Assembly: GCF_037042905.1 (NCBI RefSeq) | Contig: NC_087249.1 | Coordinates: 15,872,001-15,936,000, forward strand | Source of the DNA: Lytechinus pictus | Lineage: Eukaryota | Length of the DNA: 64,000 nucleotides | Reading direction: 5' to 3' | Shown here: piece by piece, positions 15,481-64,000 of the stretch | Position numbering within the stretch: position 1 is the stretch's first letter | Layout of the letters: every line of letters starts with the position of its first letter | Translations under genes and position numbers: made by a program | The notes under the pieces: model-generated | Databases searched by the model: none | What the model was told of the DNA's origin: nothing | What the model saw: the letters and a program-made list of their open reading frames with translations, nothing else

Positions 15481-15609
15481 NNNNNNNNNNNNNNNNNNNN
15501 NNNNNNNNNNNNNNNNNNNNNNNNNNNNNNNNNNNNNNNNNNNNNNNNNNNNNNNNNNNNNNNNNNNNNNNNNNNNNNNNNNNNNNNNNNNNNNNNNNNN
15601 NNNNNNNNN
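15481..15609. other. Assembly gap (N run)
   Basis: 129 Ns. Confidence 1.
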
Positions 15610-27069: not shown

Positions 27070-27228
27070 TCATTCATAGATCGTAGCAATGCTGTTATAG
27101 ATCGTACTCGTGGTCGAACGCCTGGAACCCGAACCCCGTTCTCCTTTTGGTTGACCGTTAACCGTGGTTGAATTGTTGGTGCGAGAGCCAGGATAGTCGT
27201 AATGTGAGCTCCTCATGGAAGATGACGT
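27070..27228 (-). CDS. Terminal coding exon
   Basis: tttaaag|TSSSMRSSHYDYPGSRTNNSTTVNGQPKGERGSGSRRSTTSTIYNSIATIYE*; phase 0; resembles the preceding exon. Confidence 0.75.
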   Translation of the reverse strand, partial: TSSSMRSSHYDYPGSRTNNSTTVNGQPKGERGSGSRRSTTSTIYNSIATIYE

Positions 27229-30200
27229 CTTTAAATGAATAAATAGAATAAAGCCCGTGCAATAGTTTGTTCAAATCAAGCAAATTAAACATGTTAGAGT
27301 AATGGATCCCTATTTTTGTATTGATCCATAGATGAAACATTATAAGAATTCATGATATTGTTGATTTTTCTTTATTTCAATCGTAGGCCTATTGTATCTT
27401 TTTTATTGCTAGGTTGGAGGTAAAATGATATTTAGTTAATGATAGTAATTATAAAATTTATACGGCGTTTAATACAGATGTTTCTAAGCGCTCAGTGTTA
27501 TGCCCATTAATCAAAATACCGGGGGAAATAAAAAGTAGTCTTAATAAATTCATAACAAAATTCAAAGAAAAAAAAAGAAACGAAAGGCAACTAAGATGTG
27601 AACCTCCATATAGGCCAATCCATAACTGATATCTAGACATTAAAAAGGTGGGTCTTTAGCAAGGTATTAAATTGATCAAGGGAGTTGGCATTATGGATAT
27701 AAGATGGTAATTTATTCCACTGAATTGGAGAAAAAACCGAGAAGGCTCAATCACCGTAAATGGTATTTGTACGTGGTCCTAAAGTAAGCTGCAAGGTTGT
27801 TGAAGAATGAAGTAGACTGAGTGAGCTCGAAGAGCGGAGAGAGATGAGGTTAGAAAAATATTTAGGAGCTATAGGCCGTTGTTTATATTTAAGACGTCAT
27901 AAGAACTTTGAAAATGATGCGCTGGCGTATTGGAAGCCAATGAAGTGATATCAGAATAGGTGAAACATGTTCAGATATTTTTGAAAGAGTAAGAAGCCCT
28001 GAAGCACTATTTTGAATTCTTTGGAGTGGGCGTAAATGTGAGAATGGGATACCAGAAAGAGCAGAACTGCAGTAATCAAGGTGGGAAGATGCCCCGGGGG
28101 GGGGGGGCGACTTCCATTGACGAGTGGATACAATGCGCGACCATGGGGTCTCGAAAAGCACCCTAAACAAGTATTTTCCATATTCTGAAAATGCACCCCT
28201 TAACAAGTATTTGCGTATGAAACCATACCCTTAACAAGTATTGGAAACCAAACCATACTCTTGGCAAGTATTCACTGAATTGAACCCCTAAACAGGTACA
28301 GCGATATTTTAATTGTTATGTATCGGTCGTCGTTATTACCTGTACCTACATCATTTGGTTTAGTAGGCCCCACCTCCCACACCTCGCGCAAATCGTACTC
28401 TAAACAGGGTTGACTGACATTGTGGCAAAAAGTACATCCTTTATAAAACATTTTAGTCTTAATTGTTTATACCCTCGCAAATTTGACCCTAAACACGTAT
28501 AGCTTTCCTAGCGAAATAGATACCCTTTTTTCGTTATTTTAGTTTTTTTGACACCCTTATTACGTTACGTACGTAACGTGCCCCATCTTGAAAAAGACAT
28601 CCCTTTTACGTGTTTTGGGGGTCGCGCATGGTATCCGTCAATGTAAGTGGCCCCTCCCCCGGGGAAGATACAAAAGCATTGGTAAGTTTAGCAGTTGTGC
28701 TTTGGTCGAGTAGCTTCCTCATTTTTCCAATCTTAAAAATACCAAAGGGGGCAGACTTACAAATATTCTTAATATGCTGTTGAAATGTAGGGTTTTTGTC
28801 TCACCTGCATAGCAGAGTGAGACTATAGGCGCCGCTTTTCCGACGGCGGCGGCGGCGGCGGCGTCAACACCAAATCTTAACCTGAGGTTAAGTTTTTGAA
28901 ATGACAGCATAACTTAGAAAGTATATGGACCTAGTTGATGGAACTTAGCCATAAGGTTAATCAAGTATTACTGAACATCCTGCCTGAGTTTCATGTCACA
29001 TGACCAAGGTCAAAGGTCATTTAGGGTCAATGAACTTAGACCATGTTGGGGGAATCAACATCAAAATCTTAACCTAAGGTTAAGTTTTTGAAATGTCATC
29101 ATAACTTAGAAAATATATGGACCTAGTTCATGAAACTTATACATAAGGTTAATCAAGTATCACTGAACATCCTGCATGAGTTTCACATCACATGACCAAG
29201 GTCAAAGGTCATTTAGGGTCAATGAACTTTGGCCGAATTGGGGGTATCTGTTGAATTACCATCATAACTTTAAAAGTTTATGGATCTGATTCATGAAACT
29301 TGGACATAATAGTAATCAAGTATTACTGAACATCCTGTGCAAGTTTCAGGTCACATGATCAAGGTCAAAGGTCATTTAGGGTCAATGAACTTTGGCCAAA
29401 TTGGGGTATTTGTTGAATTACAGCCATAAATTTGAAAGTGTGTTGGTCTAGTTCATAAAACTTGGACATAATAGTAATCAAGTATCACTGAACATCCTGT
29501 GCGAGTTTCAGGTCACATGATCAAGGTCAAAGGTCATGTAAGGTCAAAGAACTTTGGCCACGTTGGGGGTATTTGTTGAATTGCCATCATATCTCTATAA
29601 GTGTATTGGTATAGTTCATAAAACGTGGAAATAAGAGTAACCAAGTATCACTGAACATCTTGTGCGAGTTATAGTAGTTTTCAAAATCAGCACTGCTGCT
29701 ATATTGAATCGCGTGATGCAGGTGAGACGGCCAGAGGCATTCCACTTGTTGTTAAGTGTCACCCCAAGATCCCTTGCCAACTCACTACCGATCAAATGAC
29801 TATTGTCAGTGCTCCTGTGGTGGAGAGCATTGGGAAGGACTCTGTGTTTCTACATTTTGAGGAAATATGGATCATTTCACACTTGTATTCGTTTAGACAG
29901 AGCTTGTTATCATGTGACCAAGTTTTGGTGTCTTCTAAGCAGCTACTGAGCTTCCGTGCAGCTTAATCCTTACCAGTGGGTTTCAAAGTAATGAAAATCT
30001 GAGTATCATCAGCATACATGGCATGTCGAAAATCCTGGTGAGAATTAATAAATCTTCACAGAGGGCTTGTATACATGATGAAGAGAAGTGGGCCGACCAC
30101 TTAACCATGAGGAACGCCGCAGACCAAGGGGAATTTTGCCGATAGGGTGCCGTTCATGGTAACTTGTTGACTTCGATTGTGGAGGTAAGAACGGAGCCAA

Positions 30201-33200
30201 TCAAGGACAGTCCCAGTAATACCAAAGTCATTTTGCAGGCGATACAGCAACAGTTCGTGGTCGATGTTGTCGAATGCAGCAGTGTAATCAAGCAGAATGA
30301 GCACTGCCTCCTCGCCCAGTCAGTCTGCAAGCCCCCATGTTAATGAGCAAATGAGCAAGATTTATCCAAGTCCTCTCGTGGCTGAATTCATGTCCCTGCA
30401 AAATCTCGTGAATTGTGAGACTGTTTTCTCAAAGAATTAAACCCTTTTTCTTTGAGTAATATTGATTATTTTTGTACCATAGGAAAGAGTAAATGTTACT
30501 CTTTTATATTGGTTATTTCTTTTGAATAAAATATTTTGATGAATAAGTGAATTTGACCTGAAAAAATGCCTCAAACAGAATTTTCTTCCTCTGTTTTCAC
30601 TTGCAAAATTTTGTGTTTTAGGCAAAAACATTATTTACATCATCAAATAGCTCAAACTCTATACTTTCTTACAATGTCACTCTTGATATGTGGCATCTTT
30701 TAGATGGGTCAGCAGCCAGCTCTTTCCATCAAGATGCAAGACGAGATTTTTGAAATTTCTGAGTAACATAAAATCCAGAGTTCAGATTGGCTGAATAATG
30801 TTTTCAAAACAACTGGCACGGGTAATTTAAAGAGATTACCACATGGTGAGTGTGACCTATGTGGGGAACATTGGAATTTGCGTGGGTGTGTGGTCTCTAT
30901 GACCAATCAGAGCGCAGTATTCTTGAGCTGCTAAATGTACTTGGCCTATATAAAGCTGGCTGCTGACCCATCTAAAATACCTCTACTTATAAAAATTATA
31001 TCATATTAAAGCTTAGATATTCAGCTTTATCACAATCAAAAAATCATTCGGGCTCAAACAAAAATTAAAAGGAAAAAACAATTTTTGTTGCACGAAAATA
31101 ATTATTTTCTTTCATGTTTTAGATCAAATGTTCACCTATATCACACATTCTTTTTTAAAATCCAAACACATGACCTGAAAGAATGATTCTTTTACTTTTT
31201 AAAGATACCAAAAACCTTGAATTTGGTCAATATTTAGAGCAGCAATGGCCGAATAAAAAGAGGTGTTTTCGCCCGCACCATGCTCATTAACAATGCAAAA
31301 ACCCTCTAGTCATGAATATCACTTGGATAAAAGAAGCTACTTTTTCAGGGCTTGCCAACTGACTGGCCCCTATCAACAGCCAGAAGAAGATCACTGAAAA
31401 CTTTCACCTGTTCAGTCTCTGTAGAATTGTGATAAGCTGACTGATTAAAAATCCTTCAAGGTGATCCTTTAACTGCGAAGTCACGACCCTCTCCAGGACC
31501 TTAGCGATAGGCCTGTAGTTGCCGATACTATTTGGATCAAGGATCAAATTTTTGAGGAGAGGAAGTAAGAGTGATGTTTTCAGAGCTCTAGGAACAATAC
31601 CGGTTGACAAAGAGATATTAATACACTTTGTGATGACAGGGATAAGTTCCTCGAGATATTTATTCTGAAGCCATGTAGGTATCGGATCTAAATTGCAGTG
31701 TTTAGATGGTAATGACTCGGTGAGCTTCTGGATATCTAGGTCACTGATGAGACGGAATCGTGAGAAGTTATGTTCTGTAGAAGGTGTAGTTGTCGGAGCC
31801 GGGATAGCAGGATTGAAGGATGATACCACTTTCGATACCTTCTCCCTGAAGAACTCGGCAAACCGTTTGGAGAAATTCTCTGCACATGAATGATCTGGAA
31901 GAACTGAAGAATGTTCTGTTGATGGAAGCGATCTGACGATATTGAATAACTGCTTCGTGTCCGCCTCTGCAATAGGATTTCTGAAGTATGTAGACTTAGC
32001 ATTGAAAATACACTCGTTGTACGTAGGACTCGCTTTCTCGGCGACAGAGTTCCCTGTCAGCATTAAATCCAGACTGAATCATACGGCGTTCAGCCCGCCG
32101 CCTTCGTCTCTTGGCTTCTATGATATCATCAGTGAACCAAGGAGATTTTGGTCTGACAGTGACAGTTTTTACTTGAAGAGGGCATGCTTGTCAAACAGAG
32201 AGCTCAGGCAGGTGTTGTAATGATCAAAAGCCTCAGATGGACATGTCAGTTCGGAAGGTGAATGTAGTAAAGATACAGCAAGATCAACGATGATAATTTC
32301 AGAATGATAGAGAGAGAAATGTTAACGCAGAGGAATGGTCAACATAACCAATGTGACGGCGAACACACAATATAACCAAACCAAAGTTGAAGATGACCTG
32401 TGCTGGAAAGAACGGTGTCACATTGCGGGATCACAATATGTTCGCATAGTGGACCATGTTAACTTTTTATTCACATTGTCAAAATGCTTTAATAAATTCA
32501 ACAGTTATGACGATATTTTCACACTGTGGACGCCCCGACAGTGTGACTGTTCACAGGGTGTTTCCATGGTCGACTATGTGGATATATGAACCACACTGTT
32601 TATTCTAACAGTGTGAAGTGTTCCATACTGTGAACACACTGCGGCACACACTGTGGGACATCGTGCCGTTTCCGGTAGGGACTTACCGCCTTGTTGTAAA
32701 TGGCGCTCGATACCGATCGTCTGTTAGTAGATACGGGATTCCTACTTCGATGAGAATATCCAGTCTTTATGCTCGAATTACCACTCGAACCAGGATATAG
32801 GTAGTAGACATCCGACTGTGAACTTTCCTTTCGGTACGACAGCTTAAATGAAGGAAAATATGCAAATTAATCATTAATGCACATATCGTAATGAATTTCT
32901 CGTTTAAAAGGAGTGACCGAGTTAAAGATTTGCAATAACCGTCACAAATAATAACGACGTTGATAATGATAACTTTTCAAATGATGATAGTGTTGATCGT
33001 GGTGGTGGTGGTGGTGGTAGTAGTGATTGATGATGATGAAGATGATGGTGATGGTTGTGGTGATTATGACGATATGATAATGTAAAAAAATGACTTTGTT
33101 AGGGCAAATCGGTGCATTTTTACTTATGAATGTTTTTAATAGAAGATATCCTGTGATCTATATTATTTACCTAATTTGTCAGCATACCCCAAGTTTATTT

Positions 33201-36200
33201 TTTTTCTATACCATGAGTATGTTTTGAATCAGCTAGAGTGAGGTTCCTGAAAGCGGGTGGGGCGCTCTCCGTAATATTGCTGTCTACCTGTATGCATGCA
33301 CTATGCAAAGCAAATATCCTAAATCTGTTTTCAAGTTCATATTTTGAATGAATAGCTAACTTGACAAATTAGACATGTTAGAAGGGGGCTAAAAACTTAT
33401 GAATACTGAAATGCTCTGTAATTTTGTTAAAAGTTTTAGGTGTTTGGGAAAAAATACGATTTTTATCTGGGCCAATAAAGGTGAGTAAACACCTGAAAAA
33501 TAAATAGTGACTAAAATGGACAGACCTCGTCATTATCGTTCCTGGAATAGTGATTTAAGGAGGTAGGTCGATCTCCAAACATCATTTCCGCCATATTCTT
33601 CTTACGCTGGGAGCGGAAGAATGTGACGCATGCGCAGGTGAAGATGACCACCAAGACAATTCCCAGCCCTGGAACAAGTCCAGCAATGAGGGCGACGTTC
33701 ATTGTACCACCTGCTGAAGGAATGTCAGAGTAGTTGCAAACAGTAACACAGATTTCCAATAAGGCAGTCCTAATGACGTCGTCGTTCCTTTATTAATGCA
33801 TTGTTTCAGACTATTTGGAGTCGCTTCGAAAACAGTAAATGAGAAATACTTGTCAAATTACATCATCATGGTTGCTACAGATTGTGACAACGACGTACAT
33901 TTTCCTTTGTAATATGCCAAGGGTAATTAATAGAGTATAATGTGCCTTAAAGGTCAAGTCCACCCCAGGAAATTGCTGACTTGAATATATAGTGAAAAAT
34001 CAAACTTGCACAGTGCTGAAAATTTCATCAAAATCGGATGTAAAATAAGAAAGTTATGACATTTTAAAGTTTCGCTTATTTTTCACAAAACAGTGATATG
34101 CACAGCATTACTAGGTGAGTTAGTCGATGATGTCCATCACTCACTATTTATTTTGTTTTTTATTGTTTGAATTATACAATATTTCATTTTTTTATAGATT
34201 TGACAATACGGACCAACTTGACTGAACGCTAATTCCACATGTTCAGGGAGGATTTAATCGTTGTATCACTTGACAATGAGGAGAAAATTAGAATATTTCA
34301 TATTTCATATAATAATATACAAAAGAAATATAGTAAGTGGATGACGTCATAGTTTCCTCATATGCATACCAGCCAGGATGTGCATATTACTGTTTTATGA
34401 AATTAAGCGAAACTTTAAAATGTCATAACTTTCTTATTTTAAATCCAATTTTGATGAAATTTTCAGTGTTATGCTCGTTGGATTTTTCTCTTATTATTCA
34501 AATCAATTTTTTGTTGGGGTGGACTTGTCCTTTAAATTACTTTTATGCAACTGGACCCGGTCACACCCTTTTTAAAAATTACGGTCACAGACTCGATTCC
34601 TGATACTCTAAACGTCTTGTGTGTTGTCATTGACGTGCTCATTCTGCTAGTTCATTTTTTGTTTTGAATCTACGCTTTTATGAATCTACGCCTTTGACTT
34701 TGTAACCATTGAAAGAATTGAAACCTGAACATTTTCAGGCAAAAATATACACTTTCTACTCTATGAAATAGTTTGCGTGTGATTTGTAATGTGCTATTAT
34801 GTTCTACAAAGGACGGTATAAGTTTGAAACTCACCGATATCACTTCGTGTTTCGTCTGGGTCAGATGGAGATGCTAGGGGAAGAAAAAGAAAGTTTGCTT
34901 TAACCAATGATGGGTGCTAACATCTAAAGGAGGGTTTTGTTCTCTGCTAGATAAACTGCAGTGGCTGGCTGTTCTATTTTTTTATCTTCTTTTCTTCGAA
35001 ATATACTTCTTTTCACGCTTGTTATTATTACATGTACTGCTCTTATTATCTTGTTTTCCCCATTGTAAATATTGTGATTATGTTTGTGATTGCAAAACAA
35101 ATAAAACACGTGAAAAAAAAGTCTGGTTAAAGTATGAGAGATCGGATAAGATTATAGGATAAATCAACAGATTTTTATTAATGAATGAAACAGTCTTGGT
35201 GATGATTCGAAGATGTTAAATGTATTGAGACCATATGAACACGTGAACAGAATATAGAAAGCTTTGTGTTGTTAAAAATTTAAACCATCCTCCAAATATT
35301 CATAATTACGATAACCGGTATTTTATATTTAAATACAAACTATGATGGTCTCATTGTGTATATGGTAATGACATGCAGATACGAATAAATAAACAATTAA
35401 TCAATAACTATAAAAAAATGCCATGATTTCAATTTGATCAGAACTAATGTCAGTACATCCATTAGATATCAAATCATTATGCTTCCCACGCACACGGGGG
35501 GAAACCGGAAACATTATGGAAAATACTGTTCCTACCAAGAAAACAATATCGGCCGGGTAGTGAAGCTGGGTAGAGGTCGTCATAACCCTCATTGCATAGG
35601 CAACCGAATCCAAGTCCTGGATCGGTGTTGATGCAAAGGGCGTTAGTGTCACAATCGTGGCTTCCATCAGCGCATTCATCTACTTCAGTGATTTCTATAA
35701 AGACAAAAAAATAGGTATGTATTGTACACACAAACACGCACCCACACACACATGAACCTGCCTATTCCTACAAGGTTGTGCAATCGACAAATTTTATATA
35801 TTTTCTGAATTTCTTGAATTTATTATAACCATCAGAGATGCAAAAGAAATGAAGGGGGTGGGGATATCTAGCATTATATAGGAGGCCTAAAGTTATAATT
35901 GCATTGCGGAGGAAAAACAATAATAGGAAAGAAAATTAAGAACATCACAGATACGAAATTATTAAATAAAGTTGAAATTAGTGATAGTGTATGCTTTATA
36001 TTATTATTATTATCATTATTATTATTATTTACGTACTGCGCTTTTCCCAAATTGGCCCAAAGCGCTTACAACAAAAGAAGACATCAAGTATAGATTGAAA
36101 TTGTAATCCTAAAACTCTGGACATGAAAAAAAAGTATTTAGTCCCTTTTTAAATGAAGGGAGAAATGGTGACTGTCGGAGTGAAAGAGGTAACTTGTTCC

Positions 36201-48200: not shown

Positions 48201-51200
48201 GAACTACATACAGCGTGTACAAGATATACATTGAATGTCTAGTGCAGCTAACAATAGTGTGGTATAGGAGATACACACAGCAGAAGGCAGTCGACGCAGC
48301 CAACGGACTCTTTGGAATTGGAGAAAATTGGTCATACGCCAAACCCGTCTACGAGACGGTTCTCAAAATCAGGCTTATAAATTGCCTCTTGTATCTAAAT
48401 CATAGTTTTTCATCCTATATTGTGGTCTGCTTCAGGGTTTTTGAGGACAAATACAGGCATTCATACACATGTTTCGTCTTAGTTTGAGAATTTTTTAAAT
48501 CGTCTGCTCACAAAGTGAAACGATCCCTTTAATTGACTGACACAAAATATTTGTTTCATGAAAATCTGGCACGCCAAATAACACCAGGACCACTTTCGAT
48601 TAACTCAAGCCCAAAAATATGGCTTACTTACTGACAGTAATAATGTAACCTACCAATTACGTAGTCCTGAAATACGTAAAACTTGAAAAGGGCATCGTTT
48701 CCATTAATGTCAATGCCAAAGTGACATGGTATCCACTTTGAACTACATCTGCTAAAGTCTTGATTCCCGAAAGGTCCATATTCTTAATTATTCAGCATTG
48801 CTATCAAATTTTGGTACAAAATCATACACAATAATAACAATGCTCATCTTTACAATTTCATATAGATATAAAAAAAAAAAGCGTCACTGTCTTACTAGTA
48901 CAACTTGGAAGTGATCCGTTGAACTGTCCACCCAAACCACACATTACAGTATCGTCCCCTTCAAGGAGATATCCCTCTGCACACTCAAACCTACATTCCG
49001 TCGACCAATCAACACTGGAGTTCGAGTCACATGACCCGTTCAGAGGTGTAGTGTAATTTGGAACAGGACAGGTAATGACTGAAAATATCCCCCAAAAGAA
49101 ATTAAAGAATATGCAATCATTTAAACTTTGCGTTAGAGAATAATATTAATAGAGTCACTTTTACACGTGAGTTTAAAATAAAACATCTTTTTCTCAACAG
49201 ATCCAAAATCCAGATATATATAGAGTACGAGTCACTTTGAATAGCATTATTGGATGTTCTGAAACAGGACTCGATTATGTGCTGATAACGGAACTGTTCT
49301 ATCGCATATGCTTATGGTATAAAGATTGAATAAGTATTATTTCAAAAGATGCAGAAGCAAGCCGGAGTTCCGTCAGTAGCCCCAGTTCAAACTTCTCAGA
49401 GTGGCGAATTTAAGCGCACAAATTATATCTATACCCTCCCGCCTATCTTTACAATATTCCTTTTGACTAGAGAAGTATAAGCGTGTCTTCCTTACTATTA
49501 CAATATGGAAGTGATACGTTGAGCTCTCCACTAAGTCCTGAATATGAGAAATTGACAATGTAACATATCAATGGTGCAGCCCACAAATATGTAGATGAAG
49601 AGGAGCATTATTTTCATAAATGTCACTGCCGAATAAACGTGACACCCACTTTGAATTACATCAGCCAAAGACATAATTCCCGAAATAGTCCAGTTTTCTC
49701 AATAATGCAGAATTTCAATCACATTTTGATACAAAAGATTTTCCAATAACAAAAAAGTCACTTTGCAGTATCCCTATTGATAAGTGAATAAAAAGAAGGG
49801 GAACTGGCTTACTGTTACAACGCGGAAGAGATCCATTAAGTTGCCTGTCATCTCCACAACTTGCTGTATCGTCACCATCAAGGAGATATCCCTCGGCACA
49901 TTCAAACCTACACTCAGTCGACCAATCAACATTAGAGTTCGAGTCACATGATCCGTTCAGAGGCCACGTATACTCCCAAACAGGACAGGTAATAACTGGA
50001 AATATTACAAACAAAGTAAGCATATCCTATTATTCAAACATTGTCTTCTGGTTCGGGAGCATGACCATGATGATAGAATCGCTTGTAAACGTTGAGTTCG
50101 TTCTGCTCTTGCACGTGAAACAAGACGTATGTTATTCAAAAAGGAGCCAAATCCACTTAGAGCATTTTTCAGTGAATCAAATATATTATACATGTTTTCT
50201 GATGATTAAACATTTGAAAAAGGAAAGCATTCAGAACATTTCTCTATCTTGTCTAAAGAAGCACAATTGTTTAATGCGATATGGTGCATTTGATTTCCTT
50301 CTCATAAGATACAGCCATATTTACCTTTAAAAACCATTTTGGTTAGAATTGGATTATATGTTTCCTTTTCAATTAAGGTATTTGTATGCCTTCCCAATAA
50401 TAATAATAATAATAATAACAAAGACAAATACATCTGTTCATATTCACATAACACAAATACATTCGTGATTGCCTTACTTGTGCAAGTCGGAAGAGATCTG
50501 TTAAGTCGTCCACTCTCTCCGCACCTTGCATTATTGTCACCTTCAAGGATATACCCTTCATCACATTCAAACCTACACTCAGTCGACCAATCAACACTAG
50601 AGTTCGAGTCACATGATCCGTTCAGAGGCCAGGTATATTCCCAAACAGGACAGGTAATGACTGACAATGTTTCAAAATAAATGAGAATATCAAATTATTC
50701 AAACTTTGGCTAATGGTTCGGGAGCATGATAGAGTCGTTTATACATGTTGAGTTCGTTCTGCTCTTGCCCTTCAAACAAGACATTTATTTCAACAGATCT
50801 GTCTATGCCTAGGAAATAAATTTATTCGGCTCCCCCTCACATTGTTCATATTTGCAAAAATAAATAAATAACATAAATAAATAAACAAATAAAATACAAG
50901 CGTTGACTGCCTTACTGGTACAACTCGGAAGAGATCCGTTAAATTGTCCGTCATCTCCACACCTTGTAGCGTGGTCACCTTCAAGGAGATATCCCTCTGC
51001 ACATTCAAACCTACACTCAGTCGACCAATCAACACTGGAGTTTGAATCACATGACCCATTCAGAGGCGTGTTATAGTTAGGGACAGAACAGGTAATAACT
51101 GAAAATATCGCAAAAGAAATCGTTGCATATCCAATATAAAAATCTTGCGTTATAAAGTTAAGAAACATGAGTGTCGGTTATGCATAGGCGATCGTTCCGC

Positions 51201-53793
51201 ACTTGCATTTGAAACCGGATATATATCTTAACAGATCTGAAAATTAAATCAGGACCCGTTGATTAATGACAAGGATTTTATATCGTGTAGCCTTGTAATA
51301 TACTGCTTAAAAATATAGTTTTAAGAGATATTAATGCAAAAGAGCGCCACGTCATCCACTTAGTACATCGTCTAAATATCTAATCCTCAAACGGTCCCAG
51401 ATTCTCAACCAAAAATTCAGTCTTATTATCAACTTTTGATGCGTATGCCTACCCTCCAATAGCGAGGTCATCTTTGCAATGATCTTATCTATCAGAAAAT
51501 ACAAGTGCGAGTGCCTACTTGTACAAGTTGGGAGGGATCCATTGAGCCGTCCGTCATCCCCACATCGTGCAATATCGTCCCCTTCCAGACGATATCCCTC
51601 GGTACATTCAAACCTACACTCAGTCGGCCAATCAACACTAGAGTTCGAGTCACATGATCCGTTCAGAGGCCACGTATACTCCCAAACAGGACAGGTAATA
51701 ACTGGAAATATATTTTAAACAAAGTAAGCATATCCTATTATTCAAACGTTTTATTTTGGTTCGGGAGCATGATCATGATGATAGAATCGCTCATAAACGT
51801 TGAGTTCGTTCTGCTCTTGCACGTCAAACAAGACGTATGTTATTGAAAAAGGAGCTAAATCCACTTAGAGCATTTTTCAGTGAATCAAATCTATTATACA
51901 TGTTTTCTGATGTTTAAACAATTAGAATTGAAAAAGGAAAGCATTCAGAACATTACTCTATCTTGTCTAAAGAAGCACAATTGTTTAATGCGATATGGTG
52001 CATTTGATTTCCTTCTCATAAGATGCAGCCATATTTACCTTTAAAAACAATTTTGGTTAGAATTGGATTGGGTTTCCTTTTCAATTAAGGCCTTTGTAAG
52101 CCTTCCCAATAATAATAGTAATAATGATAACAAAGAAAAAAAAATCTGTTCATTTTCACATATCAAAAATACATTCGTGATTGCCGTACTTGTGCAAGTC
52201 GGAAGAGATCTGTTAAGTCGTCCACTCTCTCCGCACCTTGCATTATTGTCACCTTCAATGATATACCCTTCATCACATTCAAACCTACACTCAGTCGACC
52301 AATCAACACTAGAGTTCGAGTCACATGATCCGTTCAGAGGCCAGCTATATTCCCAAACAGGACAGGTAATGACTGACAATGTTTCAAAATAAATGAGAAT
52401 ATCAAATTATTCAAACTTTGGCTAATGGTTCGGGAGAATGATAGAGTCGCTTATTCATGTTGAGTTCGTTCTGCTCTTGCCCTTCAAACAAGACATTTAT
52501 TTCAACAGATCTGTCTATGCCTAGGAAATAAATTTATTCGGCTCACCCTCACATTGTTCATATTTGCAAAAATAAATAAATAACATAAATAAATAAACAA
52601 ATAAAATACAAGCGTGAGTGCCTTACTGGTACAACTCGGAAGAGATCCGTTAAATTGTCCGTCATCTCCACACCTTGTAGCGAGGTCACCTTCAAGGAGA
52701 TATCCCTCCGCACATTCAAACCTACACTCAGTCGACCAATCAAAACTGGAGTTTGAGTCACATGACCCATTCAGAGGCGTGTTATAGTTAGGGACAGAAC
52801 AGGTAATAACTGAAAATATCGCAAAAGAAATTGTTGCATATCCAATATTAAAATCTTGCGTTATAAAGTTAAGAAACATGAGTGTCGGTTATGCATACGC
52901 GATCGTTCCGCACTTGCATTTTAAACCGGATATATATCTCAACAGATCTGAAAATTAAATAAGGACTCGTTGATTAATGACAAGGATTTTAAATCGTGTA
53001 GCCTTGTAATATACTGCTTACGATTATAGTTTTAAGAGATATTAATGCAAAAGCGCGCCACGTCATCCACTTAGAACATCGTCTGAATATTTAAACCTCA
53101 AACGGTCCCAGATTCTCAACCAAAAATTCAGCCTTATTATCAACTTTTGATGCGTATGCCTACCCTCCAATAGCGAGGTCATCTTTGCAATGTTCTTATC
53201 TATCAGAAAATTCCTTCTTACAAGCGTGAGTGCCTTACTGGTACAACTCGGAAGAGATCCGTTAAATTGTCCGTCATCTCCACACCTTGTAGCGAGGTCA
53301 CCTTCAAGGAGATATCCCTCTGCACATTCAAACCTACACTCAGTCGACCAATCAACACTGGAGTTTGAGTCACATGACCCATTCAGAGGCGTATTATAGT
53401 TAGGGACAGAACAGGTAATAACTGAAAATATCGCAAAAGAAATTGTTGCATTTCCAATATCAAAATATTGCGTTATATAGTTATTAAAGAAACATGAGTG
53501 TCGGTTATGCATACGCGATTGTTCCGCACTTGCATTTAAAACCGGATATATATCTCAACAGATCTGAAAGTTAAAGCAGGACTCGTTGATTAATGACAAG
53601 GATTTTTCATATCTTATAGACTTGTGATCACTAGCGTACCTACGGGGGGGGGGCAGGGGGGGCACTCTCCCCCCCTAACGAGTCACAACCCATGCAAAAA
53701 CGTATCTTTGCCCCCCCTGATGGGCTTGAAAAACCTTTTTTGCCCCCCCTGACGAGCTTTAAGACCTTCAATGCCCCCTGACGAGCTTGAAGA

Positions 53794-53828
<35 letters not shown>

Positions 53829-53873
53829 TGTCAATTTTTATCTGGTACGAAATCCTTTATTTGTGACCGAAGA

Positions 53874-53910
<37 letters not shown>

Positions 53911-56900
53911 TGTCAATTTTTTTGGCGGACGGTTTTGCCCCCCCCTGTGGAAAATCCTAGGTACGCCACTGCTTGTGATATACAAATTAAAAATATGGTT
54001 TTAAGATATATTAATGCCAAAGTGCGCAATGTCATCCAATTAGAACATCGTCTGAATATAAATCCTCAAACGGTCCCAGATTCTCAACCAAAAATTCAGA
54101 CTTATTATCAACTTTTGATGCGTATGCTTACCCTCCAGTAGCGAGGTTCATCTGTGCAATGTTCTTATCTATCAGAAAATACAAGTGCGAGTGCCTTACT
54201 TGTACAAGTTGGGAGGGATCCATTGAGTTGTCCATCATCCCCAATCTTGCAATATCGTCCCCTTCGAGTCGATATCCCTCTGCACATTCAAATGTACATT
54301 CCGTCGACCAATCAACAATTGAGTCCGAGTCACACGATCCGTTTACAGGCGAAGAATAGTTCCAAACAGGACACGCAATGGCTGAAAATATTCCCAAAAA
54401 AATTGTAGCAGATCTAATCATTCGCTTTTTAATGTTCGATCCTTCTGTAAGGGCACATGCAAAATTTATTTCTTTTAACACTAGAAAGCTAAATAGGCTC
54501 ACGGTCTCCTTGAATAACCTTGGCCAAGATCTTGAAATAAACTCTACATGTTACTGACAACAATTGTCATATTTCAACCAACTTGTTCGTGGGTTGAAGA
54601 AAAAAATATGAGAGTCGTTGTATTTTTTTGTAATTTCTGTTATTTCTTACTCTTCGATTGTCCTGCATCACAATTAAGCCACCGGTTTTTTTTCCATTAT
54701 GCCTATATGACCCAAATTCATCTCACACCACCTTTCTGACATCAATTTTCTAATTAGCCTTGTGTTAATTATATATCATATTTATATTACTTTATGTTTG
54801 TGTGCACAAAATACCGTCCATGTCAGATTATTGGAAAGGTCACGGCAACGCGACAGGACCTTTCATTAGTAAGGTGCCCTGGATGTACAGCCTAACGTAC
54901 TCCGACTTCTTCTTTGCATTGACGCCTCCAGGCGACAATGCTCTGTTGTTGTTCCGTATTCCTATTCCGCCTTCTTCTTCTTTGCATTGACGCCTACAGG
55001 CGACAATGCTCTGTTGTTGTTCCGTATTCCTATTCCGTCGTCTTCTCCTTCTGTCTTCTTCTGTCTGCTTCTTCCAAAAAATCCCAATTCGTTTAACACG
55101 TAGTTTTTGTTAGCTCTGCCCTGGCTCCGTCCCTCGTCCAAATTTATCCAAATTTGAGAGATATGTTGTCCAGCATCATTAGTTGTGCACCTCGTCTTCC
55201 ATTTTCCAAAATCACTCATGCATGACCATCCAGGCGCCATTTTGTAAATTTCAAGTCCATTTGCATACCATTCCTAATCCCGTCCTAACTCCCTTATCCT
55301 GCATGCTACATACTTCTAACAAATTGCAATAGATTGGTTAAGAGTTGCTCGTTCATATAAAAACTACGATTGCCCTTCAAAATGCCGTCTATTTGCCCTA
55401 AATTCAAATCCAAGATAGTTTACGTTCAAAATGTTCATATTTATTGAAATGCAAAGTAGCAAAATCGTAAAATAACCATAACTTCCTTGTTTTTATTCAT
55501 TTCCGTCTCATATTTTCATGGTTCACTAATGGTACCATCCTTCACAATTCAACAAAAATTTTACGCATCAGTGACCATTCAATTTACAAATAGTGCCCTC
55601 TATTGCAAAGTCAACAAATAGTAAAATGACAATAACTTTGTTGTTATCATTCATTTCGGTTTCATATTTTTAGGGCTGGTTTATGGTATCATCCTTCACA
55701 ATTCAACAAATTTTTACGCATCAGTGACCATTAAATTTACAAATAGCGCCCTCTATTGCAAAGTCAACAAATAGTAAAATGACAATAACTTTGTTATCAT
55801 TCATTTCGGTCTTGTATTTTCAGGGCTGGCTTATGATCATTCTTCATAATCCATATGCTTTTTACGCATCAGTAACCATTAAATTTTCAAATAGCGCCCT
55901 CTATTGCAAAGTCAACAAATAGTAAAATGACAATTACTTTGTTGTTATCATTCATTTCTGTCTCATATTTTGAGGGTATGCTAATTGTATCATTCCTCGT
56001 ATAAATCCATATGTTTTTACGCATCAGTGACCATTACCTTTAAGAAATAGCGCCCTCTATTGAAAAGTTGAAAATAGTAAAATGGCCATAACTTCCTAGT
56101 TTTCAATCATTATGGTCTCATATATTCAGAGTTTGTTAGAGGTACCGTCCCTGATAATTCGAACGTTTTCTTACGCATCAGTGACCATTACCTTAATAAA
56201 TAGCGCCCTCTATTGCAATAGTGAAATTGCTCTAACTTTCTTGTTTTTATACATTTTGGTGTCATATTTTCAGGGTTTGCCTATGGTATCATCCCTCATA
56301 TAGAAAATGGTTTTAACACATCAGTGGTCATTACCTTAATACATAGTGCCCTCTATTGAAAAGTTGAAAATATTAAAATGACAATAACTTCCTTGTTTTT
56401 ATTCATTTGGGTCTGATATTTTTAGGGTTTGCTAATGAAAACATTCTTCATGATTCATTTTTTTACGCATCAGTGACCATTACCTTTAGAAATAGCGCCC
56501 TCTATTGAAAAGTCTCAAAATTGAAAATTGCCCTACCTTCATCGTTTTCAACCATTTTGGTCTCATGTTCTCAGGGTTCGCTTATGGTAACATCTTTCAT
56601 AATTCACTGGTTCGTTACGCATCAGTGACCATTACCTTAATAAATAGCGCCCTCTATTGCAAAGTCGAAAAATAGTAACATGGCTCTAACTTTCTTGTTT
56701 TTATAGATTTGTGTCATATTTTCAGGGTTTGCTTATGGTATCATCCCTAAAATGCCAAATGTTTTTGTATGCATCAGTGACCATAACTTTTAGAAATAGC
56801 GCCCTCTATTGCAAAGTCGGAAAATAGTAAAATTGCCATAACTTTGTTATCATTCATTTCGGTCTTGTATTTTCAGGGCTGGCTTATGATCATTCTTCAT

Positions 56901-58695
56901 AATCCATATGCTTTTTACGCATCAGTAACCATTAAATTTTCAAATAGCGCCCTCTAATATTTTGAAAATGTAAATCATCTATAGTTTTCTCTCTACCTCC
57001 TTCTGTTTCTTGCCCTCTATTAAATCACAGACGTCAATGCATGTACATCGTTCTGATACGATTGCAGTTCTAGTCTTCTTCTTCTTCGTCTTCTTCCCTG
57101 AGTACAGACCACCTTCTGGTATATATTCAGGACTATGAGGTGACCTAACAAGTGCAATACACTGGGTGGACACCCTACTCTTTGACGAACATTTGCGTCC
57201 TTTCCTATCTAAGCGACCGGGCTACGCCGCCTCCTTTACCATGAAAAATTGGTCACTGTCACCCCCCCCCCTCCCATTATCAACGAATTGCATGAAGAAC
57301 GCATAATGGAGATCAACTCTCTTTTTTATTCATTTCAATACTTACTAATTAGTATTTTACAAGAGTGGATACACCCTTAGACCTTGAAAATACGATTTTT
57401 TTTCAATCTCTTTAAAGCTAACACCACTATTATTAAATAATTTCGAAAAAATTTAACACATATGTAAACTAATGAAGAATGTTCTGAGACTCTCTCGCTT
57501 GCCTTTATCGGATTTTGGTTTCATATTGAAAGCGCTTTTTTTTTCTTACCAAATCCTACAATCAGTAAATTTCATTATTTACTTACTTTCACATCCAATC
57601 TCGTCAGATAACAAACCATTCGACATGCATTGCACAGATGAATTCCCAACGAGATTGTACCCAGTAGGACAGCTAAATTCACATCGTGTATTCTCGGGTA
57701 TGGTTGTTCCTGAGGGACACAGACTGTTGGTATTATTCAATGGTGAACAGTAGTCAACCGGACAAAATACATCTGTATAATTAGATGGATAGATCATTAC
57801 AAATTGAGTACATCGTAACTTAAATAAAAGCATGCTGAAATGTTGAAAAGAGTCATATACATGTAATACAAAAAATATAATATATATATCTGCCCTTTTC
57901 CAAAATAACATACAATGTTCAATTTTTCGCTTTCAAGCAAAATAATTTGGCAAAAAAATTACAACAGTAATTGATTACTTCTGTCAAGCCTTGAGTGATA
58001 AGTGGCGAATGAACGAGCACACAAATACCACAATGTCACTCATAGAAAGAATAAGAGCTACAGATGCTATCAAACTTTTTTTATGACCCCCCCCCCCAAA
58101 AAAAAAATTAATAATAATAATAATAATCATAATAATAAATAAAGAATAAAATAAAATAACAACCCACACACAACGTCTCGAGGCAATTTTGATTTTATAT
58201 TCGGCTTTGGTAACCCTGATTTGATTTGTTTTATTTCGACAAGGTGCAATATACACACAATACAATACAAAGAATAGCTGAGCTCAAGAATTAAGATCGA
58301 TTTGAAACGTTGATGTTTTATTATTATCCATGACGTTTAGCTGAAAAAGATTTTTAATTTTTTCGAACACAAATAGGTGGCAAACATTTTAAAGAGGTTG
58401 TGATCATGTCATTTGTAAATGGACACACCCGCCGCTCAACCAACAGCGGTCAGTGCATGTTAACAATCGATTTCAACGATGGTAAAGTATCTAAACGCCT
58501 TCCTGGCATAGCGATATACTGTGAAATTCATATTATTCAAAATTGCAAGGACACGTAAAGGAAAGAATTTCAAGCTTTTCAGTGCTTACCTTGGGGAGGG
58601 GTAGGAACAATGCCCCGTCGTCGCCGCCGCCTTGCCGAAGCCTCTGAACCATGATGATAACAATAACACAAACAACCGTGATTAATCTTCGTCAT
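27070..58695 (-). CDS. Multi-exon gene (about 27 exons): Sushi/CCP x14 - EGF/EB-like x4 - SEA - EGF_CA - TM - Tyr-motif tail, type I membrane glycoprotein
   Basis: Exons are bounded by AG/GT sites with compatible phases and translate into recognisable domains in a sensible order. Three or four indels interrupt the frame in this assembly. Confidence 0.88.
28092..28663. mobile_element. CCCGGG-ended MITE nested in L2
   Basis: Inverted ends ACTTCCATTGACG..GATACAATGCGCGACC / GGTCGCGCATGGTATCCGTCAATGTAAGT. It interrupts AFVSS|HLDYC. Confidence 0.75.
28793..29750 (+). mobile_element. Helentron/HINE-like element with internal ~162-bp tandem array
   Basis: Subterminal IR GTCTCACCTGCAT / ATGCAGGTGAGAC, (GGC)n microsatellite, about 5 repeat units, T-rich ends. 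Confidence 0.7.
30317..31365. mobile_element. TIR element with 3-bp TSD (Academ-like)
   Basis: GCC|CAGTCAGT...ACTGACTG|GCC. Removing it restores L2 AVDRGEEAVLILLD. Confidence 0.75.
32398..32680. mobile_element. MITE ending 6 nt from an exon donor
   Basis: Imperfect inverted ends GGAAAGAACGG / CCGTTTCCGGTAGGG; internal CACACTGTG repeats. Confidence 0.5.
32687..32842 (-). CDS. Cytoplasmic exon
   Basis: LSYRKESSQSDVYYLYPGSSGNSSIKTGYSHRSRNPVSTNRRSVSSAIYNKA|gtaagt; 156 nt, phase 0-0. Confidence 0.75.
33212..33287 (-). CDS. Possible cytoplasmic exon (frame uncertain)
   Basis: acag|VDSNITESAPPAFRNLTLADSKHTH g|gtatag; 76 nt, so out of phase with the next exon. Confidence 0.4.
33526..33713 (-). CDS. 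Transmembrane exon
   Basis: VALIAGLVPGLGIVLVVIFTCACVTFF followed by basic stop-transfer RSQRKK; CAGCAG tandem acceptor. Confidence 0.88.
33951..34531. mobile_element. Kolobok-like MITE
   Basis: TTAA|AGGTCAAGTCCACCCCA...TGGGGTGGACTTGTCCT|TTAA. A degraded relative lies at about 18290-18755. Confidence 0.8.
34835..34873 (-). CDS. 39-nt stalk micro-exon
   Basis: tctttttcttcccctag|ASPSDPDETRSDI|gtgag; phase 1-1. Confidence 0.75.
35536..35694 (-). CDS. Calcium-binding EGF exon
   Basis: EITEVDECADGSHDCDTNALCINTDPGLGFGCLCNEGYDDLYPASLPGRYCFL; 159 nt. Confidence 0.9.
36000..37545 (-). mobile_element. 5'-truncated L2-clade LINE with (AAT)n tail
   Basis: LQKCISDIRNRMTVNKLKLNDTKTEF, LVFKSLNKQAPQYL and GDRTF..WNKLP; 3' stem GCGCTTT..AAAGCGC; MITE inserted at about 36399-36942. 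Confidence 0.88.
37868..38099 (-). CDS. SEA domain exon 2
   Basis: IPRVLKARGVGGVITSVVLGYFNGSLGVDSAV...SLRINMASLNVA; phase 0-1; GS-x-x-V motif. Confidence 0.85.
39249..39376 (-). CDS. SEA domain exon 1
   Basis: ASRLLRISYILLAINGVQVNFDAAYRDPQSAEYIAGAEVIRYV (F...L/Y.DP.S.EY pattern); phase 1-0. Confidence 0.85.
40015..40131 (-). CDS. EGF/EB-like exon
   Basis: ESCSQSCVLEQERCVISSCRCRTTWFRREIGNGVSRCSK; ccag|..|gtgag; 117 nt. Confidence 0.85.
40633..40734 (-). CDS. EGF/EB-like exon
   Basis: DLRCNDVVCEDTQTCFQGVCVCQDGRAPVNGVCE; 102 nt, phase 1-1. Confidence 0.85.
41066..41188 (-). CDS. EGF exon
   Basis: GTPTIACQIDSCMNGGTCNQEPTTFTCTCPSGFTGMMCQN; 123 nt, phase 1-1. Confidence 0.9.
41743..41871 (-). 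CDS. EGF-like exon
   Basis: INKCSTLPCSADANSFCVNRLGTFQCSCYEGYENSIENPQCS; 129 nt, phase 1-1. Confidence 0.9.
41992..42962. mobile_element. Tc1/mariner-like MITE
   Basis: TA|CCGTGCGTATAAAAAAAAAGTTTACACTTTGAAAAA...GTGTAAACTTTTTTTTGATACGCACTG|TA. Confidence 0.8.
43605..43787 (-). CDS. CCP exon 14 (divergent type, like CCP exon 1)
   Basis: LCEVDYISPLTNINSACPAGTKITENTECDFSCPTGYNLVGNSTVYCMANGLLSDQIGCE; 183 nt; AG/GT. Confidence 0.9.
44176..45114. mobile_element. hAT-like non-autonomous element on an exon-intron junction
   Basis: TIR CAG(A/G)GGCGTCGATCC; 8-bp TSD CTTACTGG; spans the N gap. Confidence 0.85.
44881..45032. other. Assembly gap (N run)
   Basis: 152 Ns. Confidence 1.
45120..45302 (-). 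CDS. CCP exon 13
   Basis: IICPVWEYTLPLNGSCDSKSNVDWPTECRFGCAEGYLLEGDDIARCGVGGQLTGSLPHCT; 183 nt. Confidence 0.9.
45376..46947. mobile_element. GGGC-ended TIR element (Sola2-like)
   Basis: GGGCAATTCCATAAA / TTTATGGGACTGCCC. It interrupts intron sequence that is contiguous in sister repeats; no clear TSD. Confidence 0.55.
47105..47288 (-). CDS. CCP exon 12 (184 nt, +1 frameshift near 47115)
   Basis: IPCPVGNYIPPLNGSCDSNSSVDWPTICRFECAPGYVLEGGDIVMCGLGGRFNGSLP, then an extra A (CCAAAGT versus CCAAGT). Confidence 0.8.
47725..47907 (-). CDS. CCP exon 11
   Basis: IICPVWDYTWPLTGSCDSNSSVDWSLECRFECAEGYLFEGSDTARCGLSGELNGSIPDCN; 183 nt. Confidence 0.9.
47958..48528. mobile_element. Kolobok-like MITE
   Basis: TTAA TSDs; imperfect TIRs AG..TTTCACTTTGT / ACAAAGTGAAA..CT. 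Confidence 0.65.
48896..49078 (-). CDS. CCP exon 10
   Basis: ITCPVPNYTTPLNGSCDSNSSVDWSTECRFECAEGYLLEGDDTVMCGLGGQFNGSLPSCT; 183 nt; not in the ORF track. Confidence 0.9.
49496..49537 (-). pseudogene. Truncated CCP exon remnant (3' 42 nt only)
   Basis: LSGELNVSLPYCN followed by GTAAG, homologous to the end of CCP exon 11. Confidence 0.7.
49813..49995 (-). CDS. CCP exon 9
   Basis: ITCPVWEYTWPLNGSCDSNSNVDWSTECRFECAEGYLLDGDDTASCGDDRQLNGSLPRCN; 183 nt. Confidence 0.9.
50478..50660 (-). CDS. CCP exon 8
   Basis: ITCPVWEYTWPLNGSC...CGESGRLNRSLPTCT; 183 nt; AG/GT. Confidence 0.9.
50916..51098 (-). CDS. CCP exon 7
   Basis: ITCSVPNYNTPLNGSC...DHATRCGDDGQFNGSLPSCT; 183 nt; AG/GT. Confidence 0.9.
51519..51701 (-). 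CDS. CCP exon 6 (chimeric)
   Basis: ITCPVWEYTWPLNGSCDSNSSVDWPTECRFECTEGYRLEGDDIARCGDDGRLNGSLPTCT; 183 nt; donor GTAGGC. Confidence 0.88.
52190..52372 (-). CDS. CCP exon 5
   Basis: ITCPVWEYSWPLNGSC...CGESGRLNRSLPTCT; 183 nt; donor GTACGG. Confidence 0.88.
52627..52809 (-). CDS. CCP exon 4
   Basis: Near-identical to CCP exons 3 and 7; 183 nt; AG/GT. Confidence 0.9.
53239..53421 (-). CDS. CCP exon 3
   Basis: ITCSVPNYNTPLNGSCDSNSSVDWSTECRFECAEGYLLEGDLATRCGDDGQFNGSLPSCT; 183 nt; AG/GT. Confidence 0.9.
53629..53971. mobile_element. hAT-like MITE
   Basis: 8-bp TSD CTTGTGAT; TIR CACTAGCGTACCTA / TAGGTACGCCACTG. Confidence 0.85.
54200..54381 (-). CDS. CCP exon 2 (182 nt, 1-bp deletion frameshift near 54243)
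   Basis: IACPVWNYSSPVNGSCDSDSIVDWSTECTFECAEGYRLEGDDIAR, then shifts. Reads TTGGGG where sister exons have TGTGGGG. Confidence 0.8.
54905..57076 (+). mobile_element. Helitron/Helentron-like element with ~150-bp x10 satellite
   Basis: IR GCATTGACG / CGTCAATGC, 3' hairpin and CTAG end, duplicated 68-bp head, array at about 55450-56960. Confidence 0.7.
57587..57772 (-). CDS. CCP/Sushi exon 1 (divergent type, 7 Cys)
   Basis: DVFCPVDYCSPLNNTNSLCPSGTTIPENTRCEFSCPTGYNLVGNSSVQCMSNGLLSDEIGCE; acag|..|gtaag; 186 nt, phase 1-1. Confidence 0.9.
58590..58695 (-). CDS. Putative first coding exon (leader, ...GSEASARRRRRRGIVPTPPQ)
   Basis: ATG at 58695 and strong donor CAAG|GTAAGC. It ends in phase 1, in frame with the first CCP exon. 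The hydrophobic stretch LITVVCVIVIIMV lies in the +1 frame. Confidence 0.65.
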
Positions 58696-62896: not shown

Positions 62897-64000
62897 TGTG
62901 AAATAATATCAAAGTGTCTATTCAGGCCAAACCTCAACTCAAACACATCAAGATTTACACATATTTGTGGTTCATTTTATCATGGGCTGGAAAGACGGCT
63001 CGGTGTAAAAACGGCAGAGGTATAAATGGCCAGTCTGAAACTCCCATGCCAAAAAATCCAAAAGCCCCTCCATGTACAGTTGATTAAATAAGAAAGGTTC
63101 TGAGAAGAAAATAAGAATTATAATGTTGGACTAATGGAAAGGGTAACATTTTTAAATCATACTTTGGATCTTCTGAGTCAAATCGATAACACCTGAGTTG
63201 GTATTACTTATTTTTTTCTTGGACTTACATGCACGGCCCTCTCTTGTCGAATCGCTCTTCTAATATTCAAATTTGAAGCACACTTTAAATCCCAAGTATT
63301 GTACTTAATTCATTGAAGGGGAAATTCACCCTGACATATTAAGTGTATTGTAAAAATAGCAGAAGATAGTTAAAATGAAATTGATGAGGGTTTTAAAGAT
63401 TTAAAAAGCTATTAGAATTTTATTTTTTAATGGTGACGTCATTTGCGAGCAGTTTTTCCCACATATGATGTAATAAAAATTTCAATGAAATGTCATTTTC
63501 TTAAAAAAAAAAAAATAGTTTTTATTGTACCTTGAGTATATCAACATACAAATCATTTCACATCAGCTCCTGAAAGATTTGTATGTTGATATACTTAAGG
63601 TACAATAACATACAAATCATTTCACATCCGTTCCTGAAACATTTTTTTAGCATGTCATGATCTTTACCTCTGTCATTTTTGCCTCTGCCACCTTTACCTC
63701 GATCTGCCATTTTTAACTCCGTCACTTTACCTCTACCATTATTACCTCCACGGGGGCAGTCATATTTATTGCTGTACACATGCGTAACCAAATTATTTCC
63801 AGACACCCCCTACACGAGTTTTTTTTTGTGTGTAAGATATACCCCTAATCAAGTTTTCGGTGGCTTCATTTACAAATTTCGGCCCCTAAACAAATTTTCG
63901 CCAGAATTAATATGACCCCTAAAAATTTTCACGATCCGTTTTCCCGTTTCTCTTATCTCTAGCTGCCAATTTTACCTCTAGCTGCCATTTTTACCTCTGC

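Follow-up and report, generated by a model that had tools for sequence, protein, structure and literature searches.

A candidate echinoid membrane glycoprotein gene of Lytechinus pictus with a CCP array on an EGF-SEA-EGF stalk

Here we describe a locus on the minus strand of a 64,000-nucleotide stretch of the Lytechinus pictus genome (contig NC_087249.1, positions 15,872,001 to 15,936,000; hereafter the window, to whose numbering all coordinates refer) which, with high confidence, is a gene encoding in order a signal peptide, a poly-Arg run, up to 14 CCP modules, EGF_CA, EGF, EB-like and Cys-rich modules, a SEA domain, a cbEGF, a linker, a transmembrane (TM) span and a cytoplasmic tail. This placing of a CCP rod on a SEA stalk is an arrangement of known modules in a new order, and the sequence itself is already held in databases under a transferred name. 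The fuller statement, that this single protein-coding gene specifies an echinoid-specific type I membrane glycoprotein working by the mechanism proposed below, we consider moderately probable.

RefSeq isoform P0013 (1149 aa) was rebuilt exactly from 22 exons of the window with canonical splice sites, uniting the CCP, EGF, SEA, TM and tail parts in one model. The domain list of an initial annotation proved largely right by Pfam matches, exon rebuild and SEA fold, but it had missed a 39-nt linker exon (34873-34835) and the end of the TM exon at 33526, both of which were supplied by the rebuild. All exons given below lie on the minus strand.

The 5' end of the gene lies beyond the window. The ATG at 58695, originally proposed as the start, was rejected: it opens a frame reading MTKINHGCLCYCYHHG... 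that lacks a hydrophobic core, a core like that of the orthologues occurs in a different frame, and the stretch belongs to intron 1, forming its pyrimidine-rich end. No signal-peptide exon was found on scanning the part of the window upstream of 58750. A spliced contig of run X25 joins 57772 in CCP1 to 58590 and, because it fits upstream only as far as a TTCAG acceptor, exon 2 is 58643-58590 (54 nt, phase 1-1), in which (E)ASARRRRRRGIVPTPPQ completes the signal peptide and adds the poly-Arg run. Exon 1 was found in the upstream genome, 654-714 nt past the window end, as MHRLLVISVICTFLIITDHT followed by G and GT; it matches the L. variegatus N-terminus, being near-identical to its start, MHRLLVISVICTFLMITDQT. 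The S. purpuratus gene has the same exon structure, its signal peptide being split by a 17-kb phase-1 intron.

Exon 1, exon 2, CCP1 and CCP2 are spliced in an X25 contig with GT..AG joints, and the 30-nt side of the CCP1-to-CCP2 joint is specific to CCP2; the four exons are thus transcribed together, and the first three are omitted by RefSeq. An apparent CCP2-to-CCP3 joint was not trusted, since the 22 nt on one side of it occur unchanged in CCP3, CCP4 and CCP7 as well as at the ends of CCP2 and CCP6. Raw ribo-depleted RNA runs bearing the same species label (X21-X23, approximately 6% sampling) gave zero depth over exon 2 and CCP1-3. A run of five to six Arg directly after the signal peptide (58590-58643 and orthologues) is kept in all three urchin species and might serve as a convertase site or form a basic patch.

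Stop-to-stop frames and splice-site inspection delimited 14 CCP exons of approximately 183 nt each, in phase 1-1 and with AG/GT borders (...YAG before and GTAAG after the exon); a representative module reads ITCPVWEYTWPLNGSCDSNSSVDWSTECRFECAEGYLLEGDD..RCG..G.LNGSLP.CT. Pfam Sushi (PF00084), whose repeated modules of approximately 60 aa share a conserved framework of Cys and Trp, matched every one of these exons, 13 of the 14 above the gathering score, so that the 14 CCPs of the initial annotation were all recovered; full-length proteins scored 108-139 bits. The first and last modules, CCP1 (57587-57772, 21.4 bits) and CCP14 (43605-43787, 21.3 bits), form a second subtype, type B. CCP1, placed by its X25 joints to exon 2 and CCP2, is missing from the RefSeq models, and CCP3 (53239-53421, 32.8 bits) is intact and skipped by every RefSeq isoform. 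CCP4 (52627-52809, 34.7 bits) is an exact P0013 exon, and the P0013 rebuild also contains CCP5 (52190-52372, 27.8 bits), CCP6 (51519-51701, 32.7 bits), CCP7 (50916-51098, 31.7 bits), CCP8 (50478-50660, 29.7 bits), CCP9 (49813-49995, 28.6 bits), CCP10 (48896-49078, 34.0 bits), CCP11 (47725-47907, 23.8 bits), CCP13 (45120-45302, 24.9 bits) and CCP14.

Six Cys, two more than the canonical four, are invariant in 16 aligned CCP modules from three species and, by pattern reading, their positions (NG..C, ..C.F.C) are those of the selectin CCP arrangement. E-selectin was the sole PDB chain to match one CCP module end to end in a single stretch (28 bits) and was also the top fold match for one CCP, by a narrow margin (E 2e-3 versus 4-6e-3). 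Both the invariant Cys and this fold match bear out the earlier assignment of the modules to the selectin type. N-glycosylation sequons number approximately three per CCP and 32 in the ectodomain, which above the stalk is all CCP, in agreement with the proposal that a glycosylated CCP rod stands in place of a mucin domain.

A 1.9-kb block at 49807-51711, holding three CCP exons and their introns, is repeated at 51513-53431 with 92% identity, which shows recent growth of the array. CCP numbers and orders also differ between L. variegatus and S. purpuratus. From the repeat and these differences among species it follows that the array grows by tandem duplication, and its evolution is one of tandem exon duplication plus exon skipping.

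The initial annotation had taken the CCP exons to be intact, and this held for all except CCP2 and CCP12, each of which carries a 1-nt indel. Alignment of CCP2 (54200-54381, 182 nt) to CCP6 places one missing base between 54244 and 54243 (GATGTGG to GATTGG), outside any homopolymer. In CCP12 (47105-47288, 184 nt, 27.6 bits), alignment to CCP10 and CCP13 reveals one extra A before the last Cys (AA to AAA), lengthening an A run and followed by a stop; this exon is skipped by every RefSeq isoform. With every exon included, the reading frame that begins at the true ATG ends at residue 175; skipping CCP2 and CCP12 leaves it open over approximately 1280 aa. Owing to these indels, translation from the true start can yield the full protein only from transcripts that skip both exons, and it is because of the frame break that the six RefSeq isoforms all begin at an internal Met in CCP2 (54287), in the shifted CCP2 frame and without a signal peptide.

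It is possible, if doubtful, that the sequenced animal carries a damaged or decaying allele here, in which the indels are real, transcripts containing CCP2 terminate early and this haplotype yields little or no full-length protein. The position of the CCP2 deletion away from a homopolymer favours a real allele, an independent run shows CCP2 spliced on to CCP1, RefSeq left the frame uncorrected with six isoforms starting at the internal Met, and the early stop of the all-exon frame points the same way. However, apart from the indels, the two halves of CCP2 and the whole of CCP12 have open frames with no Cys lost, which would make any damage very recent, and with exons in phase 1-1 throughout, skipping restores the long open frame. 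The X25 contigs end at 54244 and resume at 54229, ending at the deletion site as expected of a second allele in that run, the CCP12 change falls in an A run, a typical site of assembly error, and the orthologues are intact.

Several features of the introns and flanks were noted alongside the exons. A run of N (44881-45032) marks an assembly gap in the repeat-rich CCP13-CCP14 intron; it begins 87 nt past the GTAAG donor of CCP13, adjoins a poly-G dispersed repeat, and is spliced across by the RefSeq models in phase 1-1. Because CCP13 and CCP14 are both in phase 1, the reading frame is independent of the true length of this gap, and a further phase 1-1 exon may be hidden within it were it much longer than estimated. 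The CCP1-CCP2 intron contains a satellite-like tandem array (55450-56956) with a period of approximately 150 bp and copies 73-83% alike, and a patch of 40-55 nt (57152-57205) covered by RNA reads at 100-300x; as the flanks of these reads do not fit, the patch is taken to be a fragment of an abundant RNA encoded elsewhere. Rfam gave no match in the window, this patch included. The CCP2-CCP3 intron is repeat-rich at 53572-54129, with poly-T, poly-A and poly-C runs, and is regarded there as a dispersed repeat since RNA and contig runs cover it deeply with many variants. Minus-strand open frames in the tail and stalk introns (31407-32078, 36112-36402, 37106-37579 and 30104-30319) look like fragments of retroelements (reverse-transcriptase-type), and an older L. 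pictus model, XP_054755757.1, wrongly splices the 31407-32078 piece into the tail. The dispersed repeat at 63000-64000 recurs more than 200 times, at 81-87% identity, across the contigs of the genome, and a second assembly gap (15481-15609, 129 N) lies downstream of the gene in sequence with no evident coding exons.

Below the CCP array, four small Cys-containing modules precede the SEA domain, all present in the P0013 rebuild. Of the four EGF/EB modules first listed, EGF1 (41743-41871; calcium-binding type, EGF_CA 31.6 bits) and EGF2 (41066-41188; EGF 34.6 bits) were confirmed by Pfam, EGF3 (40633-40734), an EB-like Cys module, scored 23.8 bits against EB, just below the cut-off of 24.3, and EGF4 (40015-40131) is a Cys-rich module with no Pfam match that is kept in orthologues and paralogues. 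The membrane-adjoining cbEGF (35536-35694; EGF_CA 37.4 bits) is likewise part of the rebuild and stands as first described; it also weakly matches the EGF_Mua-3 profile (E 0.009).

The SEA domain is split over two exons, the first (39249-39376, in the P0013 rebuild) carrying beta1-alpha1 and the second (37868-38099) the beta2-beta3 turn with its invariant GSLGV. Both were assigned from the alignment, the model and fold matches. Pfam SEA (PF01390) gave no match (E 0.01-0.1) with the two exons searched separately or with four full-length proteins, and the SEA alignment, used as a profile against the PDB, returned chance matches only. Taking as criterion an alpha/beta sandwich of approximately 120 aa in the order beta-alpha-beta-beta-alpha-beta, we obtained that order in an AlphaFold model (pLDDT 78, pTM 0.68) computed from an alignment of nine sequences. 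The best six Foldseek matches to this model were all SEA domains, from MUC16 (1ivz, 7sa9, 8vm1, 8gkl) and from TMPRSS6/transmembrane-protease, with 2e7v at rank 9 (TM 0.57-0.72; TM 0.63-0.72 and prob 1.0 for the top matches). Judged by its predicted fold, the two-exon region is a SEA domain, so that the SEA assignment of the initial annotation stands on fold (AlphaFold and Foldseek) but not on Pfam SEA or PDB sequence search. G67-S68-L69-G70 is invariant in all nine SEA sequences and lies in the predicted beta2-beta3 turn (residues 66-70), between model strands 57-65 and 70-77. MUC1-type SEA domains autocleave between G and S in this turn. By analogy, the stalk SEA is probably cleaved at GSLGV, a motif that differs from the classic GSVVV.

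The linker exon (34835-34873) encodes ASPSDPDETRSDI, is required for the exact P0013 sequence and is kept in orthologues. The TM exon (33526-33713, donor GTCTGT) holds the hydrophobic span NVALIAGLVPGLGIVLVVIFTCACVTFF, then the basic stop-transfer sequence RSQRKK and the first 31 tail residues, in accord with the TM segment proposed earlier. Tail exon 1 (32687-32842; LSYRKESSQSDVYY...AIYNKA) and tail exon 2 (27070-27228; ...RRSTTSTIYNSIATIYE and the stop codon) are both in the P0013 rebuild. With 11 Tyr and 29 Ser in 134 aa, the tail is Tyr-rich as had been claimed, but a Tyr signalling tail fits only in part, as there is no ITAM and only some Tyr are conserved: the tail has no canonical ITAM (YxxL/I x6-12 YxxL/I) and no conserved ITIM, and several Tyr are not conserved in S. 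purpuratus. TIYNSI of the window fits TxYxxI, a motif that S. purpuratus does not keep, its counterpart being GFYNNG. Motifs kept across three orthologues are LSYR.ESSQSDVYY, RS.SS..Y and RRS..S..YN; the last Y-N occurs also in the HYR paralogue described below, with which only the S-x-x-Y-N core is common. As read from sequence motifs, the RRxS sites point to phosphorylation on Ser no less than to signalling through Tyr.

Membrane mucins are among the closest known systems. The exon order EGF4, SEA, cbEGF, linker, TM and tail agrees with the EGF-SEA-EGF-TM base originally proposed, and MUC3, MUC12, MUC13 and MUC17 have the same EGF-SEA-EGF-TM-tail order beside the membrane. The fold match of the urchin SEA to MUC16 has a TM of approximately 0.7, and the G-S pair of its beta2-beta3 turn is in the place of MUC1 autocleavage. 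Membrane mucins likewise carry an extended glycosylated ectodomain above the stalk, glycosylation of the urchin protein being predicted from sequons. Whereas that of the mucins consists of O-glycosylated Pro/Thr/Ser tandem repeats, the urchin protein has none and bears instead a rod of six-Cys CCPs with predicted N-glycosylation. The SEA domains also differ, with an identity of 10-17% to mucin SEA, Pfam SEA unreached, and GSLGV in place of GSVVV.

The C. elegans MUA-3/MUP-4 proteins and Notch-type SEA-like switches share with the urchin protein a long modular rod, a SEA or SEA-like domain, a TM and a tail, and one S. purpuratus fragment is auto-named 'MUP-4-like'; in contrast to them, the urchin protein has no vWA, LDLa or LNR and no known cytoskeletal or transcriptional tail domain. 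The 63-kDa sperm flagellar membrane protein, from which SEA takes its 'S', is likewise an urchin membrane protein with EGF repeats and SEA, and differs in having no CCPs. It had been cited as having a SEA-EGF-TM base, which did not hold: the S. purpuratus protein (470 aa) is GPI-anchored rather than transmembrane (PMC2119707), and no sequence link was recovered, since it was not retrieved by homology searches with a length range that included it, using the P0001 base, base alignment A2 or the P0025 SEA-cbEGF region, or by phmmer with the SEA exon. NCBI names one fragment of the HYR paralogues '63 kDa sperm flagellar membrane protein-like'.

The CCP array followed by TM and tail is also the layout of RCA receptors (CR1, MCP), and sea urchins have a C3/Bf complement system, so a complement regulator or receptor whose CCP array binds urchin C3 fragments deserves consideration; CR1, CR2 and factor H were indeed the top PDB sequence matches by summed score. 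These scores are, however, sums over many weak repeats of at most approximately 12 bits each, RCA proteins have four Cys per CCP rather than the six seen here and in selectins and SVEP1, and they have no EGF-SEA-EGF stalk, all of which makes this reading distinctly unlikely.

We return to the gene as one echinoid membrane glycoprotein and to its relatives. phmmer with the second SEA exon retrieved a 1088-aa protein with 100% identity, which is one of the RefSeq models of this locus. These models (XP_063955958, 59, 61, 62, 64 and one more), named "SVEP1-like", comprise six isoforms that differ by skipping CCP7, CCP8 or CCP10 (P0008 skips CCP7 and CCP10, P0001 skips CCP8) and that all skip CCP1, CCP3 and CCP12; an older L. 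pictus model is 97% identical. The L. variegatus orthologue (XP_041465278-84; 1166 aa, 83% identity), one isoform of which is named "P-selectin-like", and the S. purpuratus orthologue (XP_030832897 / A0A7M7N8V7; 1467 aa, 63% identity) have the same domain order and a signal peptide. In a group of paralogues, HYR takes the place of CCP on the same EGF-EB-Cys-SEA-cbEGF-TM-tail base, with 38% identity over the base, and four further SEA-like matches occur on another contig of the L. pictus genome. Urchin genomes abound in mosaic CCP/EGF/HYR proteins. Homology searches outside urchins gave generic EGF matches only; two short SEA-like fragments (P0006, P0007) were set aside as evidence of taxon range, their sources being marine metagenome scaffolds.

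Although the CCP14-EGF1 junction rests on gene models in three species, and paralogues show the base with a different N-terminus, it is very unlikely that prediction pipelines have fused two adjacent genes, one for the CCP array and one for the EGF/SEA/TM part. The two parts are on the same strand with all exons in phase 1-1, and the intron that separates them spans no more than 1.7 kb. EGF1 lacks a start codon and a signal peptide, CCP14 lacks a stop and a TM, and independent models in three species join the parts in the same way.

The single gene so delimited shares modules with selectins and SVEP1. E- and P-selectin also have six-Cys CCPs in a row, then a TM and a tail (short in selectins), and CCP2 of E-selectin is the best single-domain match to an urchin CCP in both sequence and fold. 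Unlike the urchin N-terminus of signal peptide, poly-Arg and CCP, that of selectins comprises a C-type lectin and one EGF, and the urchin protein further differs in having EGF and SEA modules between CCPs and membrane; no Lectin_C match was found in P0013, P0010 or P0011. SVEP1/polydom, like the urchin protein, mixes selectin-like CCPs with EGF and cbEGF, and the urchin paralogues carry HYR too. It is a secreted matrix protein of approximately 3500 aa that has vWA and pentraxin domains but lacks the SEA and TM of the urchin protein, and the full-length members scanned had no vWA or pentraxin match. The names 'SVEP1-like' and 'P-selectin-like' come from best-hit transfer on the CCP repeats, and orthology to vertebrate SVEP1 or to a selectin, to which these names, the six-Cys CCPs and the E-selectin fold match would lend some colour, is extremely unlikely given that vWA, pentraxin and C-type lectin are lacking in the full-length members scanned, that SVEP1 is secreted whereas the urchin protein has a TM, and that selectins have no SEA.

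The initial annotation did not recognise the architecture as a named gene, and homology and literature searches indeed found no characterised orthologue; the sequences are nevertheless present as RefSeq predictions in three urchin species. Searches of the sea-urchin literature on SEA/sushi, SVEP1 and the adhesome turned up no account of the gene. For annotators, the RefSeq proteins of the locus are N-terminally truncated at the frameshift, the name "SVEP1-like" is misleading for it, and true first exons exist and are transcribed.

By analogy, the best reading of the encoded protein is an adhesion or recognition surface glycoprotein that is mucin-like in its stalk. A mechanism of cleavable SEA stalk, recognition rod and phospho-regulated tail, drawn from anatomy only, is put forward tentatively. 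The protein would function in the manner of membrane mucins or of Notch-type SEA receptors: its glycosylated CCP rod would project from the cell and bind a partner, the SEA domain would be cut at the invariant G-S of GSLGV with its halves held non-covalently, and pulling would shed the CCP rod from the stalk, while the conserved RRxS and Tyr motifs of the tail would serve signalling or trafficking. A speculative extension, unlikely to hold when taken whole, is that echinoids possess a private family of force- or cleavage-gated receptors with swappable rods (a fast-evolving, exon-shuffled array of six-Cys CCPs, or HYR modules in the paralogues) on one conserved cassette made up of EGF, EB, SEA with GSLGV, cbEGF, TM and a Ser/Tyr tail, the CCP member acting in self/non-self or gamete recognition with a CCP number that varies by species, allele or splice form. 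If the preferred reading is true, urchins have set a selectin-type CCP rod on a mucin-like or Notch-like shedding stalk, a combination on which we found no paper, and the family would lend itself to the study of how domains, CCP or HYR, are exchanged while the signalling base stays fixed.
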